From: Lepidodermella squamata
Lineage: Eukaryota; Animalia; Gastrotricha
Assembly (NCBI GenBank): GCA_047495785.1
Contig: JBLDXI010000074.1
Location: 868,001 to 932,000, forward strand
Length of the DNA: 64,000 nucleotides
Direction: 5' to 3'
A program made the translations under genes and the position numbers. The notes under the pieces are model-generated. The model made no database searches. It was not told the DNA's origin and saw nothing but the letters and a program-made list of their open reading frames with translations. Shown here in pieces: positions 9,282-59,300 of the stretch. How positions within the stretch are numbered: the stretch's first letter is position 1; each line of letters begins with the position of its first letter.

Positions 9282-11623
9282 TCAGCTTGTAAACGGCCGT
9301 TGGTGTTGCGTCGCCGTCAGCAGTTTTCGGCATAGAATTTTAAAATCAGCAACTTGGTACTCGGATCCGCCATACGACAAGGTAGCTACTGTGTCACCTT
9401 TTCGAATTTTACCTATAATTAACAAAAAAAAATGGGTTGAATCATAGGGAATGGGGAATTTGAAATTTTAATAATTTAATAATTTCTTTTCAAATAAAAA
9501 ATTATTTAATGTAGTTTTTTCCTGAATTTTCCTGAAATTCAAAAAATCCGTAATTTATTCAAGAAAATCAAGGAAAATTATTGTTCTCGAAAAACGAGTT
9601 TACGGAATTGGCATGGAATATAACTAACCGACATGAGTTCCGACGATGCCTGGTGGCCGGGCTCGGGCAATGTAGACGAGCTCTTCAGAGGCTGTATCGT
9701 AGCCGGCTTTCACAGCATCTGAAGGTATCGATCCGTCAATGCCCAACGATGTCCACTGAAACAAATGTTCGAGATTTTCAAAAAAATTCAACAAATTATT
9801 GAAAAAGACGTATTTATTTTTTTAAAAAATGCCGTCATTTAAGGACAAATTTTCTACGAATTTTCAATTTTTTGCTTGACATTTTAAATTTTTCAAACAA
9901 ATTGAGAGACTTACGTGAAGATGGCACAAGTCGGGCTGTGTATTAGTGAGCACTTCGTAAGTATTCGCCTCGATTTCTTTGCCGTTCCACGCGACGTAAC
10001 ACGCGTTGCGGCTGGGTATCACCGTACCCGGCACGATGTCATTCGTCGACAGCGTCACGCGGCCGATGTACATGAACTCGCCACCTCGACCGCCAAGCCT
10101 TTTAGTAACAAAGCGAACATTTTAGCATTACATTGTTTAACGCGGTTCAAGTTGGGCAGACCGTAATAACAGCAAATACCCAAAACAGCAAACGCGATGC
10201 ATCTTTTATATTGTAAGTTTTCGCAGATTTGTCGCGAATTAAAAAATTTGCTGTTTTGTCGCCGTACCTGAAGTTGAGCGTGCCAATAGGATTCGCTATA
10301 AATATTGGGTCCCAGCACTTAATCGCTTATTTTTAAATTTCGAGTTTCCCCTTCTTCCCTAGAATTATGACGTATCGATTCCTTGTATCGGCTATCGATT
10401 TCAAGAATCGATTTTACCCAAAATTGATTTTCGCAAAGTCGTGGAAGCGAACGTTAAATATGTTCCTAACTACAGCTGATGGCACCACAGGTAGCTTTAA
10501 TAAAAAATTCCAGGGTCATAAGTATCGCTCTAAAAAGGAGCAAATCAAAATAAAACCGCAAATGTCAAAATAAAACAAAACTAAAACTGATGTTCCAAGT
10601 GAGCATCACTCAGTTCAGCCGAAGGCTTCATCACTCAGTTAGGGAAAATAATATGTAGACCCTTTAAAATCTGTGGTAAGAAACTGGAATAGCTGGAAAC
10701 AACTTTACTTTATGGCCACCCCCACATCCACCACATCCACCCCCTTATGCTACCAAATTGAAGTAAAAACACGCCAGCTCAATATTGTGCTGATCGATTA
10801 TTTCCAAGCATAAAATTCGAATAAAATACTGAGAAAATGCATCATATAAGGTAAATTTTTCATTGATAATCTATAAGTTGGCAACTGGAAAGTGTGTTAA
10901 AACTAAGAACTCACCGGCCAACTTCGACGGCGCCAGATGGCACGTCGCCATTCTCGGCTACGACCCACTTTAAATTGCGATCAGATCCACGGCGCTTCCA
11001 TGCCAGATATAATCCGGCGCTGTGGAAAGAAAATTGAAAATTAGTTTGAAAATTAGCTTGAAAAATTGCTTTCAATTAGTTATATTTTGAATTAGGTATA
11101 ATGAGTTTATCACGTCCAGAAATGTCCACGGGCCGAATTTTCGGAACCCGGCCCGGCCCGTAAGAACGAATGTGAAACCCGTCCCGGCCCGTCCCGGCCC
11201 GTAGTCACAATTAGCTGTATTTTAATCAGTGAGAAGTTGAAATTTTTTAACTAAATTTGTACTGGAAAAAGCGCCCAACACTAAGTAATAAAAGTTAGAT
11301 TGTTATATCATTAAATACTGCCATTTGAGGTGAAAACGGACGTGTAGCAGTGGCATCTAGTTACCTATAGGTTCCGCACCACTGGCGGCGGGTCTCAAAA
11401 GTCAGACCCGAACCCGGCCCGTGGACAACTCTGATCACGTCAAATTCTTCATCCTACATCCTAATGCTGAACCACCTAATTTTTTCCTAATTTTGCGTTC
11501 TACGGTGATGCGTTCTAGATTCAGACCGAATAGTCTGGTTTTAAAGTTGACTTTCGAAAGCAATTGAATTCATTCAGGTGCAACCGAAAGATTAGATTGA
11601 AATTCCTACCTGTGCATCGACAT
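9282..11623 (-). CDS. DM9-repeat protein, copy 3 (5 exons)
   Basis: MSMHS|AGLYLAW..LKWVVAENGDVPSGAVEVGR|..MYIGRV..YEVLT..|WTSLG..VYIARA..|GKIRKG..YGGSE..FKILCRK..FTS*. Confidence 0.85.
11117..11433. mobile_element. hAT-type MITE, 317 bp, in intron 1 of DM9 copy 3
   Basis: TIRs CAGAAATGTCCACGGGCCG / CGGCCCGTGGACAACTCTG; 8-bp TSD ATCACGTC at 11109-11116 and 11434-11441; subterminal CCCGG repeats. Confidence 0.9.
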
Positions 11624-48667: not shown

Positions 48668-49030
48668 TCAGCCCTTGTAGGAGGCGTAGTAATTCTGCTT
48701 CGGTGAGTTGTAACCCGACTTCATGTTGGTGTTGTGGTAATAGACTTGCTGCATTTTCGGGTTTGAAACCACTCTGTTCACCTGATCCTTCGACTCCCAT
48801 GAGCTGAAACCAGCTAACCGACTGTGACTTGACAGTGACCGCTTAATAACGGATTTTTCGATAGTTTCAGTGGTCGATTTAGCAATAGCTCTCAAAGGTT
48901 TGCTGGCCACTCGGCGAAGGTGACTGAACTTATTGCTGACCATTTGAACTGCAGCATCTTGGGGCAGAAGGAGACCGATAATGAATATCAAAGTAACGCT
49001 TAAAACCGCTAAATTTTTAGGGCAGCCCAT
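48668..49030 (-). CDS. Small secreted precursor, FSxLRRxASKP family copy 3
   Basis: Signal peptide, FSHLRRVASKPL, KR site, C-terminal GYNSPKQNYYASYKG. Confidence 0.78.
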   Translation of the reverse strand: MGCPKNLAVLSVTLIFIIGLLLPQDAAVQMVSNKFSHLRRVASKPLRAIAKSTTETIEKSVIKRSLSSHSRLAGFSSWESKDQVNRVVSNPKMQQVYYHNTNMKSGYNSPKQNYYASYKG

Positions 49031-49252
49031 CTTAGGGACAAGAAATTGTCAAAAAACAAGAATCGAGAAAAAATGCTTTTATCCAAATATCCCTTCGCAA
49101 GAACGATTTTTAATCCTTTAAGTGGTCTCATAAAATCCTCCTAGAAATTTCTTACACAGCCAAATGTCTAGCGGAGAAAACCTCAATTCCCTACTCAAAA
49201 ATCGATTGGGTATTTGAGCTTTATAACCTAAAATAAAAGAGAAAAAAACATG

Positions 49253-49269
49253 CGCTCCTGGGTGGGCTC

Positions 49270-49309
<40 letters not shown>

Positions 49310-49326
49310 AATTGCGCCACAGAAGC
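49253..49326 (-). tRNA. tRNA-Asn(GTT), intact
   Basis: GCTTCTGTGGCGCAATTGGTTAGCGCGTTCGGCTGTTAACCGAAAGGTTGGTGGTTCGAGCCCACCCAGGAGCG folds as a cloverleaf and is followed by a T7 terminator. Confidence 0.96.
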
Positions 49327-49474
49327 TGCCTTAATGCTACGAGTTATTAAGGCATGACAAAAGAAAAACAGCAAGCATCGCACTAAAAAGCGTGTTTGGA
49401 TCTCATTTAAGTGTAAACCCGCGATAGCTCAGCTGGTAGAGCGGAGGACTGTAGATGAAATGCAGGTATCCTTA

Positions 49475-50919
49475 AGGTCTGCGCACATACTCGTATGAAA
49501 AAATGTGTATGTGATTTGTAATAAGTTTTTTGCCGGGGTCGTATGTGTTGGCAAAAAAAATCACATACAGACCCGTTCACAAACTGATTTCTTTTCTCCC
49601 TGTATGTGATTTTTTTTCTGGCCGAAGAGGCCGCTGAAAAAAATGACCAACTTCGATGGGGCTCGAACCCCGTCCGCCCGTTGAACAGGCCGGTATGATA
49701 GCAACTGTACTATGTTGCCATCATATTTATCTGTCGCTATAAAAAGGCTAATTATTGGTTGCTAATATCTATAAAAGCTATCCGCGTTTTCTGGGTCAAG
49801 TGCGGGCATGAATCATTAATCTTCGACTTGTTTGTTGACGCTTTCATCAATGCATTTTTTGCCTTAAAGCCTAATTCATAGGTCACACATTAAGCTTGAC
49901 GGCTTAGCCATGTCGATATAATTATCGATGTGTGCGAAGTCGTCAAGGGTTCGATTCGACGTGCCGCCATCCCTTTTTTCAGTGGCCTCTTCGGCCAGAA
50001 AAAAAATCACATACAAGGAGAAAAGAAATCAGTTTGTGAACGGGGGCTGTATAGGTCTCCGCACAAACTCTGCATGAAATAAGTAGACAAGTTTTGCGTT
50101 AAGTTTTTTGCCTCGCTCGCATGTTTTAAGAAAAACATATCACATACGACCGATTCACAAACTCTGAATGCGTAAGCGTTATGTATTTTTGCAACGAGGT
50201 ATTTTTACATATCGCTTAAAAAAGTCGTGTGGTGAGCGGGGTTCGAACCCGAGCCTCCCATCGTCGAGGCCAGTCAATAACCAACCTCGCCACAACGACT
50301 TACGCAAACAGTGAGATAATTTCTCCGGTTTTAATCGTGCCACCATCACAACTCTGCGAACATTGAAGTTGAAAATATTAATTATTATGACTAATTGAAT
50401 AATTATCAAAAACTCGATGGAAATTCAGGAAAAAATCATAAAAATTCAGAAGAATTTTTTTTAATTCCCTGTACCTTTTGGGGTCATTTGGGATAAATAA
50501 ATAAGAAATTTTAAGTGCTCTATAAATAATTACCAATTATATTAATTAATAATTGTATCACGATGCGTGATCCGTCAAGTACTGATTACTACAACTCGAA
50601 ATCATGCGTCTTGTTAGTGTAATCGGTGTTATGCCGATCTCACAAACAAGTCACCCGGGTTCGATCCCCGGTCAAAGCAAGCCTTTTTTAGGTGACAACG
50701 CCGTTCAGCAAAAACATAACGCATACGCATGCAGAGTTTGTGAATAGGGTCCGTATGTGGTCGTATGTTTTTCGTCGTATGCGTAAGTAATTGGCCGTAT
50801 GCGTAAGCAAAAAAAAAGATACGGAGTTTGTGCGGAGACCTTATGCTTTTTGCTGTATGTGTATGTGTTTGCTCGCATACGCATGAGAAAAAAAAAGAAA
50901 CGAGTTTGTGGGAAGGCCT
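49475..50919. mobile_element. Non-autonomous DNA transposon with 3-bp TSD (TTA), PIF/Harbinger-like, inserted in tRNA-Tyr
   Basis: TIRs AGGTCTGCGCACATACTCG / CGAGTTTGTGGGAAGGCCT (15/19 match); TTA duplicated at 49472-49474 and 50920-50922; long internal inverted arms. Confidence 0.88.
50053..50841. mobile_element. Related element nested in 49475-50919 (TSD TAT)
   Basis: Perfect 18-bp TIR AGGTCTCCGCACAAACTC / GAGTTTGTGCGGAGACCT; TAT at 50050-50052 and 50842-50844. Confidence 0.92.
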
Positions 50920-51063
50920 TTAGGTCGGTGGTTCAAGTCCGCCTCGCGGGAATATTTTTTCAGCAACCACCAATCTTGTAACCGTGATTATTTTTATTTC
51001 AGAATAAATATGTAAAATACCAACAACAAATGTGAGTATAATTTTGGCCGAGGGTAAATAGTC

Positions 51064-51824
51064 TTAGGCGAATAGGTATTTTCGACACAGCACCTCGTAT
51101 TGCTTGATGGGAATTTCCTTTCCACCATAAGGCATGTACATACAGCCGTGAGACGGGTGAACCTGAAATACATGAAATACGTTACTTCAGCCGAATGCCG
51201 AATAGATTTTCAAAATTTCGATAAAAAGAAGCATTTTAGGCTAGAGTCAGGAAGATGAAGAGCCCCTTCACAATGTTTGCTAAGTTTGAGCGTCCGCCCC
51301 ACTGAATTATCCTCAAGTATTGGCAGTATATCTCACCTTGCCTCCGTGCAATCCGCAAGGCTCATCCGGCGGTGATGCTCTCCCAATGTACAGCGGTTCG
51401 TTGGTACTCAGAGTTCGACCAGCTTCAACAGCTCCTTTCATTACGAATTCTCATAACCTGAATCATTCGCTGGTCAGTATGTTACCTATTGGTACCATGC
51501 CATCGCAAGCCCGGACCCATTCGAGATGGCAGTTGCCAGCGTTTACCAAAACTTCGTAATTTTTCTCGCCTCGCTCCTTCAAGCCACAACCGACATAGCA
51601 GCAGCCATGTGAGGGCACAACTTTACCCGGGCACAGATCTCCACACATTTTCGCCCGCCCGACAAACATGACTTCGCCGTTCTGCTGGCTACGGCCGATT
51701 TCGACCGCGTTTGGCGGGATCAGACCGTTGTAGGCCGGTCTCCAGCAGGGTTCGTCTTGTCTAAATAAAAATAAATGAGACTATCTGTTGAATTGCAAAA
51801 TGCATCAGCGAACCTTCTTGCCAT
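51064..51824 (-). CDS. DM9-repeat protein, copy 9 (4 exons)
   Basis: MARR|QDEPCWRPAYNGLIPPNAVEIG..FVGRA..PGKVVPSH..YEVLV..LEWV..|..GGK|VHPSHGCMYMPYGGKE..YEVLCRKYLFA*. Confidence 0.9.
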
Positions 51825-56365: not shown

Positions 56366-59300
56366 ATGATTGTTCTCATTTCACTTATTTTGTCAATTTC
56401 GGTGAGTTTTCAAGTCAATGGCATTCTGGACGAGGACTACCCCTTACCTGGATTTCCTCATCAACATTTCGCTAATCCGGGCATGAGCGTGAATATTTCT
56501 GCATCGATACCTCAAGCTCCACTGGTATTCACTCTCGGTATTGTGCTCACTAATCCGCAAATGACTGAGGCGTCGATTCGACAAGTTTTGAGTGCTGTGG
56601 AACAGAGGGAGACGAGTATTGTCCCCCTCGTAGCGCCTTACTTCACCCCGCATGGATCGCCAATTCTGCCACAAAGAGCTACTCACATTAATTACCGCCT
56701 TCAAGTAAATTTCCAAAACCGAATTCTAAAATTATTCGCGGCATTTTCTGCCTGTGATCTCCGTTGTATTCTGGAGTTATCTTTTTACATTTTATTCAAT
56801 TTCAGGTAAATCCCGTCAATACTCATAACATGGGGCTGAATCGGCTTCTTAAGACCCTCTTCTGCTCCAAGGCCTCTCAAGGCACAAATGCTTTATTCAT
56901 CCTGGTCGATAAATCGTCAACGCGCCATAACCAAGGCGCCCAACTCACGAATATGCTGGCAACGTTGGCTCAAAACATTGGACTGCCTATGATAGCGTGG
57001 TCCTCGTCTGCGTCAGGCTTGAGGGGTCTTCAAACATCGCCATCGGAAGAGCAAGATAGTAATATGGATACTTTACTACTAGCCCCAGCTATAAGAAGCC
57101 AAGCTAGAGCAATTTACTCGTTCTTGAAGCAATACCATGGAGACAGAAAGGTAAACATTGGAACTCTTCCCTTCTTATTTTTAGTTATTAAAATCTCCTT
57201 CAGGTAACTGTTATTGCCTCAGTTCGTACTCCGGGCTATGAAACCTTCGTCAATGAAATTCGAGCTACTTCAGATATCGAAGACAAACGGGAATCGATTT
57301 TCGAGTTCGACGCGCATCAGTATCACATGTCTTCGAGGATCATCCAAATCTTGCTACTCGATGACGCGTTTGCTGAAAATATGAACCGAGAACTGGGTTC
57401 GATCCGAGACCATACTGAAACTAGAGCCTTCGTTGTCTTCGCTAATCAAGCAGATAGCGATAAAATTTTCGAGGAGGCTCATCATTTAGGTATATTAATC
57501 CCGGAATGGTTTCGTAAAATTGATTTTTTTCCTCAATATAATTTTAGGCATGACTTCGGCAGACTGGCTTTGGGTTCTCGGGAAACCGTCCCTGGGTGAT
57601 CAGGGTGAGCACTCGGTTATTCCTCTGAATTACGTCCCAGGGCTAGTCGCTGTGACTTACAATACCTCTTTGAGTGCTCAAATTGTTGCCCTGCGCAGTG
57701 CAGTTCAAATCTGGTCTGAAGGCTTTCAAAAATTTGCTCATCTAGCTAGGGCTACCAGCTTACAATCTTCGCCTCCCAAAGCCGTGAAATTAGCACCTGT
57801 AATTTCGTGCAATAATTCTGCTCAGGTAAGAAGAAATATTTCCTGGCACCTCCGGTATTGCATGTCCTTTTTAGGTGAAATGGCAAAATGGCCACTTATT
57901 CTACCGAGTTCTGAAGCATCGCCTAGCCAAGCTGATGAATAGCAGCCAATCGTCGGCAATTCAAGGCCTGAGTGATATCATCTTCTTAGATTTGCAGTTC
58001 AACCGCAGCTGGAAGAAAATCGGAGGTTGGTCATCGACCACTAACATGGCCAATATTGACGATTCGCGGTGGCTGCAAAGCTTCGAACAGCGGCAAAGAT
58101 ACGCTATGTCTCGTAAGTTTTGCTAGAGCTCAATTTCGCGTCTGTGAATAGCATTTCATGAGAAATTCGGTTGTAACCAATTTTTTCTAACAATAGCGTG
58201 GGGAACACCTACAGGTGAGTTGCATGAGGATTTTATAGAAGGGTAGAATTTTTGTTAACGGAATGCACCATCTGAATGGGTGTTTATAGCGAGAATTTGA
58301 TGTTTCTGTTTAGAATGCAATCCATAATCCATGACATCATTCATTTATTCAAGTTTTAATTTCAATCAGGTAAGAACAATGTTGTGAGAATAGCGACGCT
58401 AGAAGAGCCGCCCTATGTGCTCTATGAATTCCCCGACTCGAAAACAGGGGCCTGTGATCGAAAGGCGATCCCCTGTCGTTTGTCGCCCCTTGCATTCGTG
58501 AAAATGCCTGAAACTAAAGACGACGCCCATATGCATGTGCACATATCGACAGCGGCTGAAGACTCGATTCACAATCACCATCGTAACGGTTCAATGATGT
58601 GTTGCGCTGGATTTTCGATGGATCTACTCAAGCGATTATCTCATGACATTGGGTTCAATTTCGAGCTGTTCGAAGTTCGTGACCGAAAATGGGGTGCTTA
58701 CGATCAGGTGACAGGTGGCTGGAATGGCTTGGTTCAGGTATGTTGGACTTTAATCAGTTTATACGAAAAACCCCGTTTAAATAGCACCAAGATCATTTTA
58801 GAACCAGAAGAACCAAATTATAGAAAATTGTCCTTCTTTTATTTACTGACCGATCTCGATGTAAAAAAAAGCTTAATTAAAAACGTTCTCTGTTTGGGAA
58901 AGTTCTGGCGACCTCTTCATAGCTTGGTGGAGGTTCGTCCATACTTTCATTTATTGTTGCATTCTGCTGCGGCTGCTGTGAAATGGAAGCGCTAATAGAC
59001 TGCATAGCCACAATAGGACTTTCACATGCTGCCACTCTGTTAGCTGAAACCTGCCTCTGAATTCGCTGGTTTCTCATGATATTCCTGGCGTGAACTGCTT
59101 CAAAATAGGCGATTCTCTCGGCTTGTAATTGCGCTAGCCGAGCTTTGAGGGAAGCAGTTCTAGCCAGTGTTCGATTTTGTTTGCTGTTACTACTTGCTGC
59201 CGAGTCAGATGACCGCATTTCTTGACTAGGCGCGACTCGATAGTAGGCTTCTCCTTTTGATTTGCAATCGCCGTTCAAGCACTTGATAAGTAGCACCATA

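Follow-up and report, generated by a model that had tools for sequence, protein, structure and literature searches.

The retroelements Ty1 and Ty3 of yeast, and TRE and DGLT-A of Dictyostelium, have most or all of their copies at set distances from genes transcribed by Pol III. Tethering to a target is well established for retroelements and for P elements, although to our knowledge it has not been described for PIF/Harbinger transposons. Among DNA transposons, Dada elements have a short end sequence that recurs in the target beside the duplication (PMC3706591). With respect to non-autonomous elements, MITE multimers and self-insertion have been documented in plants and mosquito (PMC5172404, citing Jiang and Wessler 2001), and high self-insertion rates, in both nested and adjacent forms, were reported for Castaway and Gaijin (Jiang and Wessler 2001, Plant Cell 13:2553, summarised in PMC5172404). 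The ORF1 protein of Harbinger binds the element ends and recruits the transposase (PMC2836001, reporting Harbinger3N_DR work); literature searches yielded nothing on Harbinger subterminal binding sites.

The locus described here, a tRNA gene split by two nested elements, lies in a 64,000-nucleotide stretch of the Lepidodermella squamata genome (the window; contig JBLDXI010000074.1, positions 868,001 to 932,000), and coordinates given without a prefix refer to this window. The locus was probably made by two ordinary cut-and-paste insertions of a young, low-copy family of PIF/Harbinger-type MITEs.

Architecture of the split tRNA-Tyr gene

When introns are allowed, ARAGORN reads 49418-50951 as a single tRNA with a 1458-nt 'intron'. 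In silico excision of 49475-50922, that is, of the element and one TTA, joins 49418-49474 to 50923-50951 and restores a perfect 73-nt tRNA-Tyr(GTA), in which four of four arms are paired and a canonical 13-nt intron occupies position 37/38. The features of the locus are as follows.

49252-49326, minus strand: tRNA-Asn(GTT), intact neighbour (ARAGORN; Rfam RF00005, 69 bits)
49418-49474, plus strand: 5' portion of tRNA-Tyr(GTA), with exon 1 including the A box (49418-49454) and the intron (49455-49467)
49468-49474, plus strand: first 7 nt of tRNA-Tyr exon 2, ending in the target TTA
49472-49474: left copy of the TTA target-site duplication of element B
49475-50052, plus strand: left 578 bp of element B, with the 5' TIR (49475-49493) and the TAT target of element A (50050-50052)
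49572-49642 and 49974-50044: subterminal inverted-repeat arms of element B (71 nt, 97% complementary)
50053-50841, plus strand: element A, 789 bp, nested in B, with TIRs at 50053-50075 and 50819-50841
50150-50188 and 50710-50748: subterminal inverted repeat of element A
50845-50919, plus strand: right 75 bp of element B, with the 3' TIR (50901-50919)
50920-50922: right copy of the TTA target-site duplication of element B
50923-50960, plus strand: 3' portion of tRNA-Tyr with its terminator; the tRNA part (50923-50951) comprises the variable loop, the T arm with the B box GGTTCAAGTCC and the 3' strand of the acceptor, and the Pol III terminator is the T6 run at 50955-50960

The duplicated TTA corresponds to tRNA positions 42-44, which close the anticodon stem and include the first variable-loop base, and the gene is broken after position 44, so that the A box, which stays on the 5' piece, is 1.45 kb from the B box (GGTTCAAGTCC) on the 3' piece. 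The intact tRNA-Asn(GTT) gene lies 92 bp upstream on the opposite strand and is not part of the insertion. It was the only match accepted in an Rfam search of 48800-51600 (E<=1), in which a snoZ107 match, scoring 21 bits where 50 are required, was discarded as noise. Further downstream, the window encodes an iGluR ligand-binding domain at 58384-58995.

The outer element B spans 49475-50919, is flanked by TTA on either side and has ends, AGGTCTGCGCACATACTC and AGGCCTTCCCACAAACTC, that match at 15 of 19 positions. The inner element A is flanked by TAT (50050-50052 and 50842-50844), and its TIRs are perfect over the first 18 nt and 91% identical over 23 nt. Once A and one TAT are removed, B measures 653 bp and aligns over its full length with ten other genomic B copies, which are 94-99% identical to the B consensus. 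All ten read ...GGGGGCTG-TAT-GCTTTTTG, with a single TAT, at the position where A entered. Both insertions therefore have verified empty sites, provided for B by the restored tRNA and for A by the paralogous B copies; the assembly contains no empty-site allele, or paralogue with the intron of the split gene. Neither A nor B has an ORF longer than 76 aa. The inner end-motif, CACAAAC/GTTTGTG, is repeated within the long subterminal inverted repeat of each element, and the window contains four end-motif matches, compared with 0.02 expected. The copy of B found here differs by 1.1% from the B consensus and the copy of A by 0.6% from its own, which fits an earlier arrival of B and a later one of A.

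In its 3' half the split gene matches 221 intact tRNA-Tyr genes without a difference, and its exons are free of decay, as would fit the young age of the inserted elements. The first T6 run inside B occurs 52 nt from the start of the element. With T-runs and 1.45 kb of DNA between the A and B boxes, Pol III would be unable to make a tRNA from this copy, which is presumably dead. Its loss would be harmless, since more than 220 further tRNA-Tyr genes are present in the genome.

The A/B family and its PIF/Harbinger affiliation

A degenerate end pattern recovers 80 family ends in the genome and none in the reversed control. The family is of low copy number, with about 50-60 insertions that extend over ~33 kb of the 121 Mb genome (~0.03%), and BLAST together with the end types delimits three subfamilies.

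Subfamily A: about 780 bp, about 13 copies
Subfamily B: about 650 bp, about 22-24 copies
Subfamily C-type: about 640 bp and ~78% identical to B, about 15-23 copies

Elements A and B are small and non-coding, carry TIRs, generate target-site duplications and occur in multiple near-identical copies, as is characteristic of MITEs. Among the other A copies that were read, the eight youngest of nine (seven full-length) differ by 0.3-1.2% from the A consensus, while nine of the ten other B copies differ by 1.2-3.4% from the B consensus. Of the 22 copies with both flanks complete, 19 have a perfect 3-bp duplication; the duplicated triplet is TAA/TTA in 12 and TAT/ATA in three, the remainder being TTT, TAC, TGA and TTC, and no wider target consensus was found around the 22 insertion sites. 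MITEs in general are dense in this genome.

The only pair of family ends more than 1.5 kb apart bounds a 3.56-kb element at C25:400805-404365, which shares the first 254 bp and at least the last 103 bp of B at 94-97% identity and has the exact 3' TIR. This element contains a DDE_Tnp_4 (PF13359) match at C25:401651-402001 on the minus strand (50 bits, cut-off 24.8), which covers profile positions 27-127 of 158 within a 208-aa open frame. The Myb family PF13873, the only Pfam family tried for ORF1, has no match at C25:400-404 kb, and the element may be defective; elsewhere in the genome, PF13873 Myb ORFs are found beside other Harbinger copies. The presence of a PIF/Harbinger transposase match in the sole long element with B ends supports the Harbinger assignment, and judged by its ends and its transposase match the 3.56-kb element is a candidate for the expected autonomous, or formerly autonomous, partner. 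The 3-bp duplications, the shared 18-23-nt TIRs and the DDE_Tnp_4 match in the B-ended partner likewise support the view of A and B as non-autonomous PIF/Harbinger-type MITEs. Subfamily A has no long partner among the family end pairs and is presumably cross-mobilised. Genome annotation thereby gains a small, well-defined Harbinger-type family.

The first-pass annotation of this DNA had described an intron-bearing tRNA-Tyr gene split between its A and B boxes by a TTA-duplicating element, with a second, related element nested in the first at a TAT duplication. All of this holds: the coordinates are exact and rejoining yields a perfect tRNA, TTA stands at 49472-49474 and 50920-50922, and the nested element has perfect 18-nt ends and an empty TAT in ten B copies. 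The affinity to PIF/Harbinger that it had proposed now has the DDE_Tnp_4 match in the only long element with B's ends behind it, and a candidate for the longer partner with the same TIR, for which it had suggested a search, is provided by that element with its PF13359 match.

tRNA-like modules within the elements

Each of A and B holds two outward-facing tRNA-like modules, in which an A-box-like segment and a B box are accompanied by a T-run.

49645-49722, minus strand: left module of B; B box GGTTCGAGCCC at 49659-49669, T7 run at 49637-49643
49903-49973, plus strand: right module of B; degenerate B box at 49947-49957, T6 run at 49974-49979
50227-50299, minus strand: left module of A; A-box-like segment TGGCGAGGTTGG, B box GGTTCGAACCC, T6 run at 50218-50223
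50607-50683, plus strand: right module of A; B box GGTTCGATCCC at 50658-50668, T6 run at 50684-50689

None of the four modules is matched by the Rfam tRNA model RF00005, and none has a cloverleaf as its MFE fold. ARAGORN calls the left module of A only at 85% of its threshold, and the right module of A has an Rfam match, limited to 18 nt of the T arm, to tmRNA. Such tRNA-like Pol III modules within a DNA transposon are an unusual feature of the A/B family, and no account of Harbinger MITEs that carry them turned up in literature searches.

Association of the family with tRNA genes

The relation of the family to tRNA genes was assessed at 24 independent loci with both flanks read, corresponding to about half of its copies. 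The tRNA density of the genome was taken from the number of B-box motifs (9,475) less that in the reversed control (2,211), which leaves ~7,260 tRNA-like sites, a density of one per 17 kb. According to ARAGORN and Rfam, a tRNA gene lies near two of the 24 loci, in both cases within 50 bp. One of these is the split tRNA-Tyr itself; at the other, the 3' end of a B copy is found 44 bp upstream of a gene for initiator tRNA-Met. The other 22 loci have neither a tRNA gene (ARAGORN, Rfam) nor a canonical B box within 300 bp. Canonical B boxes within 300 bp of the 24 loci number two, compared with 1.1 expected from the genome-wide rate, and both belong to the split locus, one to tRNA-Tyr and the other to tRNA-Asn. 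Among all 80 family ends in the genome, a B box comes within 30 nt only after the one in the split tRNA-Tyr. The intact tRNA-Tyr genes that share the 3' half of this gene number at least 221 and lie mostly in tandem arrays.

Under uniform insertion, a single in-gene hit among 40-55 insertions has a probability of 0.07-0.10, given that the genome is very tRNA-rich. Finding a tRNA gene within 50 bp at two of 24 loci, with 0.25 such loci expected, has a P value of 0.026 under the same null, which becomes 0.21 when the locus that prompted the analysis is set aside; if only the lower tRNA density outside arrays is used, the corresponding values are 0.002 and 0.06. Overall, the chance probabilities for the tRNA association amount to 0.07-0.25. 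In elements of the Pol III-targeting class, most copies are located at a defined short distance from their targets; in the A/B family, two of 24 loci are within 50 bp, and the position relative to the Pol III unit is inconsistent, being +44 inside tRNA-Tyr and -44 upstream of tRNA-Met. Obligate or strong targeting of tRNA genes by this family is thus excluded, while a weak bias towards them, as judged from about half of the copies, may exist.

The first-pass annotation had suggested that the family may home to Pol III-bound DNA and had proposed a test for enrichment of its insertions in or near tRNA genes. Homing is not supported, given the 22 of 24 loci without a tRNA gene and the single B box following 80 ends, and the enrichment has a P value of about 0.2 without the prompting locus. 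Its observation that the TIR begins with AGGTC, the same as the adjoining tRNA bases, is correct for the split tRNA-Tyr; AGGTC is found beside the duplication at no other solo insertion site, and its sharing by the element end and the tRNA is therefore attributed to chance rather than to a rule of the family.

A milder form of the suggestion is a non-obligate preference for TFIIIC/TFIIIB-bound DNA, in which both tRNA genes and the family's own relatives, with their A-box/B-box modules, would be hit. Such a preference could account for the two loci that lie inside a tRNA gene or at most 44 bp from one (P 0.026 under the uniform null) and would give a role to the two outward-facing modules of each element, with their B boxes and T-run terminators, although these modules lack both a tRNA-model match and a cloverleaf fold. 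It is nevertheless unlikely, given the 22 loci with no tRNA or B box within 300 bp, the lone B box beyond 80 ends in a genome offering ~7,260 targets, many of them in open tandem arrays, and a P value that rises to ~0.2 once the choice of locus is allowed for.

Same-family nesting

At the split locus, the second insertion, that of A, entered element B and not the tRNA. The same behaviour is observed elsewhere in the genome. At C15:2671653-2673717, a C-type element holds an A element (TCA duplication), which in turn holds another C-type element (AGA duplication), and at C15:2057924/2057933 an A and a B element lie 8 bp apart, with insertion sites separated by 5 bp. Neither of these two loci has a tRNA gene nearby. 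The three nestings and one 5-bp adjacency compare with 0.013 expected (P <1e-6), and the excess of same-family nesting over chance is real. The two successive hits at a Pol III locus, from which homing had originally been deduced, are accordingly better described as one hit in a tRNA gene and one in B, the latter of a kind that recurs at two tRNA-free loci.

The nest sites share a sequence context. In both C15 nestings, the duplicated triplet directly abuts the subterminal GTTTGTGA of the host copy, the junctions reading AGAAA[TCA]GTTTGTGAGC and CATTC[AGA]GTTTGTGAAT. Where A lies in B at the split locus, the TAT is 11 nt beyond the GTTTGTG at 50032-50038, and in the adjacency case the insertion is 5 bp outside a B end. 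The GTTTGTG motif is absent from solo insertion sites. Relative to the tRNA-like modules, the nest sites are found ~25-75 bp past the terminators and the adjacency case ~175 bp past. Since the distances from the modules vary and the sites are near GTTTGTG, the double hit is read here as MITE self-nesting.

As the elements carry B-box modules, the nesting may also be read as an attraction to Pol III factors, and the four same-family co-locations against 0.013 expected count in favour of the preference for TFIIIC/TFIIIB-bound DNA considered above. Set against it are the inconsistent positions (+44, -44, 25-75 bp and ~175 bp) and the proximity to GTTTGTG that the nest sites have in common. A somewhat better prospect, though still a doubtful one, is that the incoming complex is tethered to a putative end-binding protein on the GTTTGTG/CACAAAC motifs of the resident copy, for which the Harbinger ORF1/Myb-type partner or the transposase would be candidates. 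Tethering would refine self-nesting by ordinary insertion, without excluding it. It would explain why two of the three nestings directly abut GTTTGTGA, why the third is 11 nt off and why the adjacent insertion is 5 bp outside a B end, and by analogy it is consistent with the characterised Harbinger ORF1 protein, which binds ends and recruits transposase (PMC2836001). On the other hand, the events number only three or four and the 3.56-kb element has no PF13873 match. The motif zones occupy ~1/4 of each element, so that proximity alone is weak evidence, and what stands out is confined to the two exact abutments. Insertions could also be drawn to long inverted repeats or to AT-rich, unconstrained DNA, and unrelated MITEs interrupt B copies as well. 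Two other B copies are interrupted in this way, which suggests that A/B-type elements are generally permissive targets; these interrupters are not family members and were left out of the self-nesting count.

The density of MITEs in the genome and the unrelated MITEs within B copies might suggest that both insertions at the split locus are pure coincidence, or the nested structure could be an artefact of assembly. Either is very improbable in view of the exact junctions with duplications, the verified empty sites and the recurrence of nesting at two other loci for a family that makes up ~0.03% of the genome and has a nesting expectation of 0.013.

Proposed course of events

Self-nesting by ordinary cut-and-paste insertion, the preferred reading, implies the following course. 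The 653-bp element B would have integrated at a TTA inside one dispersed tRNA-Tyr copy, presumably mobilised in trans by a transposase like that of the 3.56-kb B-ended element, and repair of the staggered 3-bp cut would have left the TTA duplication. With the A and B boxes 1.45 kb apart and T-runs between them, the gene copy would then have been dead. Later, the 789-bp element A, from a sister subfamily whose ends are almost identical to those of B, would have integrated at a TAT in the right subterminal region of B. The first insertion may be considered a chance event, or at most a weakly biased one, in a tRNA-rich genome, while the second probably reflects a tendency of the family towards its own relatives rather than an attraction to the Pol III locus. 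The locus is a clean textbook case of nested MITEs, which appear to have inactivated one redundant tRNA gene.

Comparison with known systems

The A/B family most closely resembles the Tourist-like MITEs, such as mPing with Ping/Pong and Harbinger3N_DR, with which it shares short, non-coding elements, TIRs, 3-bp duplications of the TTA/TAA type, homogeneous copies of low divergence and termini common to a longer DDE_Tnp_4-bearing element. Its repeated subterminal motifs are of the kind bound by the ORF1 protein (PMC2836001), and by analogy may be bound here. In contrast to Tourist-like MITEs, the target triplet is relaxed (including TAT, TAC, TGA, TTC, TTT and AGA), every element contains a pair of outward-facing A/B-box modules that end in T-run terminators, a Myb-type ORF1 is not detected by PF13873 in the putative parent and the family is very small, at 80 ends and about 50-60 insertions.

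The split locus recalls Dada in that a DNA transposon lies in a tRNA or snRNA gene and a repeat of the end sequence, here AGGTC, stands next to the duplication (PMC3706591). Dada elements, however, generate 6-7 bp duplications, lack TIRs, have nearly all of their copies at one site of the target gene and encode a different DDE transposase (PMC3706591), whereas the A/B family has 3-bp duplications, clear TIRs and one of 80 ends in a tRNA gene, and it therefore falls outside the Dada superfamily.

As for Ty1/Ty3, TRE and DGLT-A, the B copy 44 bp upstream of a tRNA gene is at a distance typical of these elements, but 22 of the 24 A/B loci have no nearby tRNA, and the mechanisms differ, being DDE cut-and-paste in one case and reverse transcription with an integrase or endonuclease in the other.

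Like plant MITE multimers, the nested and adjacent A/B copies represent independent insertions into or beside MITEs. Unlike them, they belong to an animal family of tens of copies and are found beside the subterminal motif of the host copy; as the family has only tens of copies, the excess of nesting over chance is far larger than in plant MITEs. There is a small chance that the family homes to itself beside GTTTGTG, through an end-binding protein or through Pol III factors on the modules, with the two tRNA-associated copies as the edge of a weak bias. Protein-mediated homing would give the self-nesting wider significance. With its ~50 copies and three exact nestings, the family would lend itself well to a test of such homing, and self-homing of this kind would be the counterpart, in a DNA transposon, of P-element homing or Ty/TRE targeting.

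tRNA-like modules within the elements

Elements A and B, which lie nested in the split tRNA-Tyr(GTA) gene of the window, each contain two outward-facing tRNA-like modules. In every module, an A-box-like segment is combined with a B box and a T-run terminator; the module is positioned between subterminal repeats on one side and the AT-rich centre of the element on the other. Neither a match to a tRNA model nor a cloverleaf fold was found for any of the four.

tRNA-like modules of B and A (window coordinates)
49645-49722 (-)
49903-49973 (+)
50227-50299 (-)
50607-50683 (+)

Insertions into and beside family members

On contig C15 of the genome assembly, a triple nest was observed, in which a C-type element of the same MITE family contains an A element that in turn harbours a second C-type element. 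The GTTTGTGA motif of the host copy directly adjoins the duplications of both inserted elements.

Triple nest, C15:2671653-2673717 (local stretches L009 and L010)
L009:960-3018 with L010:1-1618, whole nest
L009:1498-1500 and 2925-2927, TCA duplication of the A element in the outer C-type element
L009:2173-2811, inner C-type element
L009:2170-2172 and 2812-2814, AGA duplication of the inner element

One A copy and one B copy were also found end to end on C15 (L028:2283-2292; C15:2057924-2057933), the sole spacer being GTAATATA, which comprises the GTA duplication of A, AT and the ATA of B. This B copy is interrupted by an unrelated MITE of approximately 175 bp with GGGTGT ends, beyond which it is truncated. 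Another unrelated MITE, of 627 bp, sits in the middle of a B copy on C3 (L025:593-1219; B copy C3:2762119-2763398); its ends are TCTCTCCGTTGAGCA, and it carries numerous internal repeats resembling TTGAGCAC.

Genomic setting

The assembly represents a small genome that is tRNA-rich to an unusual degree. Genome-wide, B-box motifs exceed the control by approximately 7,260. The 3' half is the same in at least 221 intact tRNA-Tyr(GTA) genes, the majority of which are located close to contig ends in tandem arrays with a period of 3.4-6 kb. The intron variant differs from array to array, with one per array.

Locations of tRNA-Tyr(GTA) genes
C1:5.08-5.18 Mb
C9:5.55-5.65 Mb
C10:2.40-2.73 Mb
C20:3.19-3.26 Mb
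C24:4.95-4.99 Mb

On C1, an initiator tRNA-Met gene is present in two identical copies, 8.6 kb from each other (pair region L045:1128-1475 and 9744-9815; C1:3626427-3635114), with a U1 snRNA gene 117 bp after the first and a B element 44 bp upstream of the second. In the window itself, an ORF fragment at 58384-58995 (+) carries the ligand-binding domain of an ionotropic glutamate receptor (PF10613, E 1e-11), which identifies the DNA as that of an animal.

A candidate parent element

The distance between paired family ends exceeds 1.5 kb in one case only, at C25:400805-404365, where B-type termini enclose approximately 3.1 kb of other sequence. This 3.56-kb element keeps the B termini, including at least the left tRNA-like module, and contains a DDE_Tnp_4 profile match (C25:401651-402001, (-)); no PF13873 Myb match was found within it. 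For subfamily B, it is the candidate autonomous parent.

In other Harbinger copies of the genome, DDE_Tnp_4 and Myb_DNA-bind_5 ORFs are paired, approximately 1 kb apart. Judged by their ends, these copies are unrelated to the A, B and C-type MITE family.

Harbinger copies with paired ORFs
C34:531331-532822
C42:2046617-2048108
C23:424663-426141
C31:214503-215982
C48:1014151-1015630
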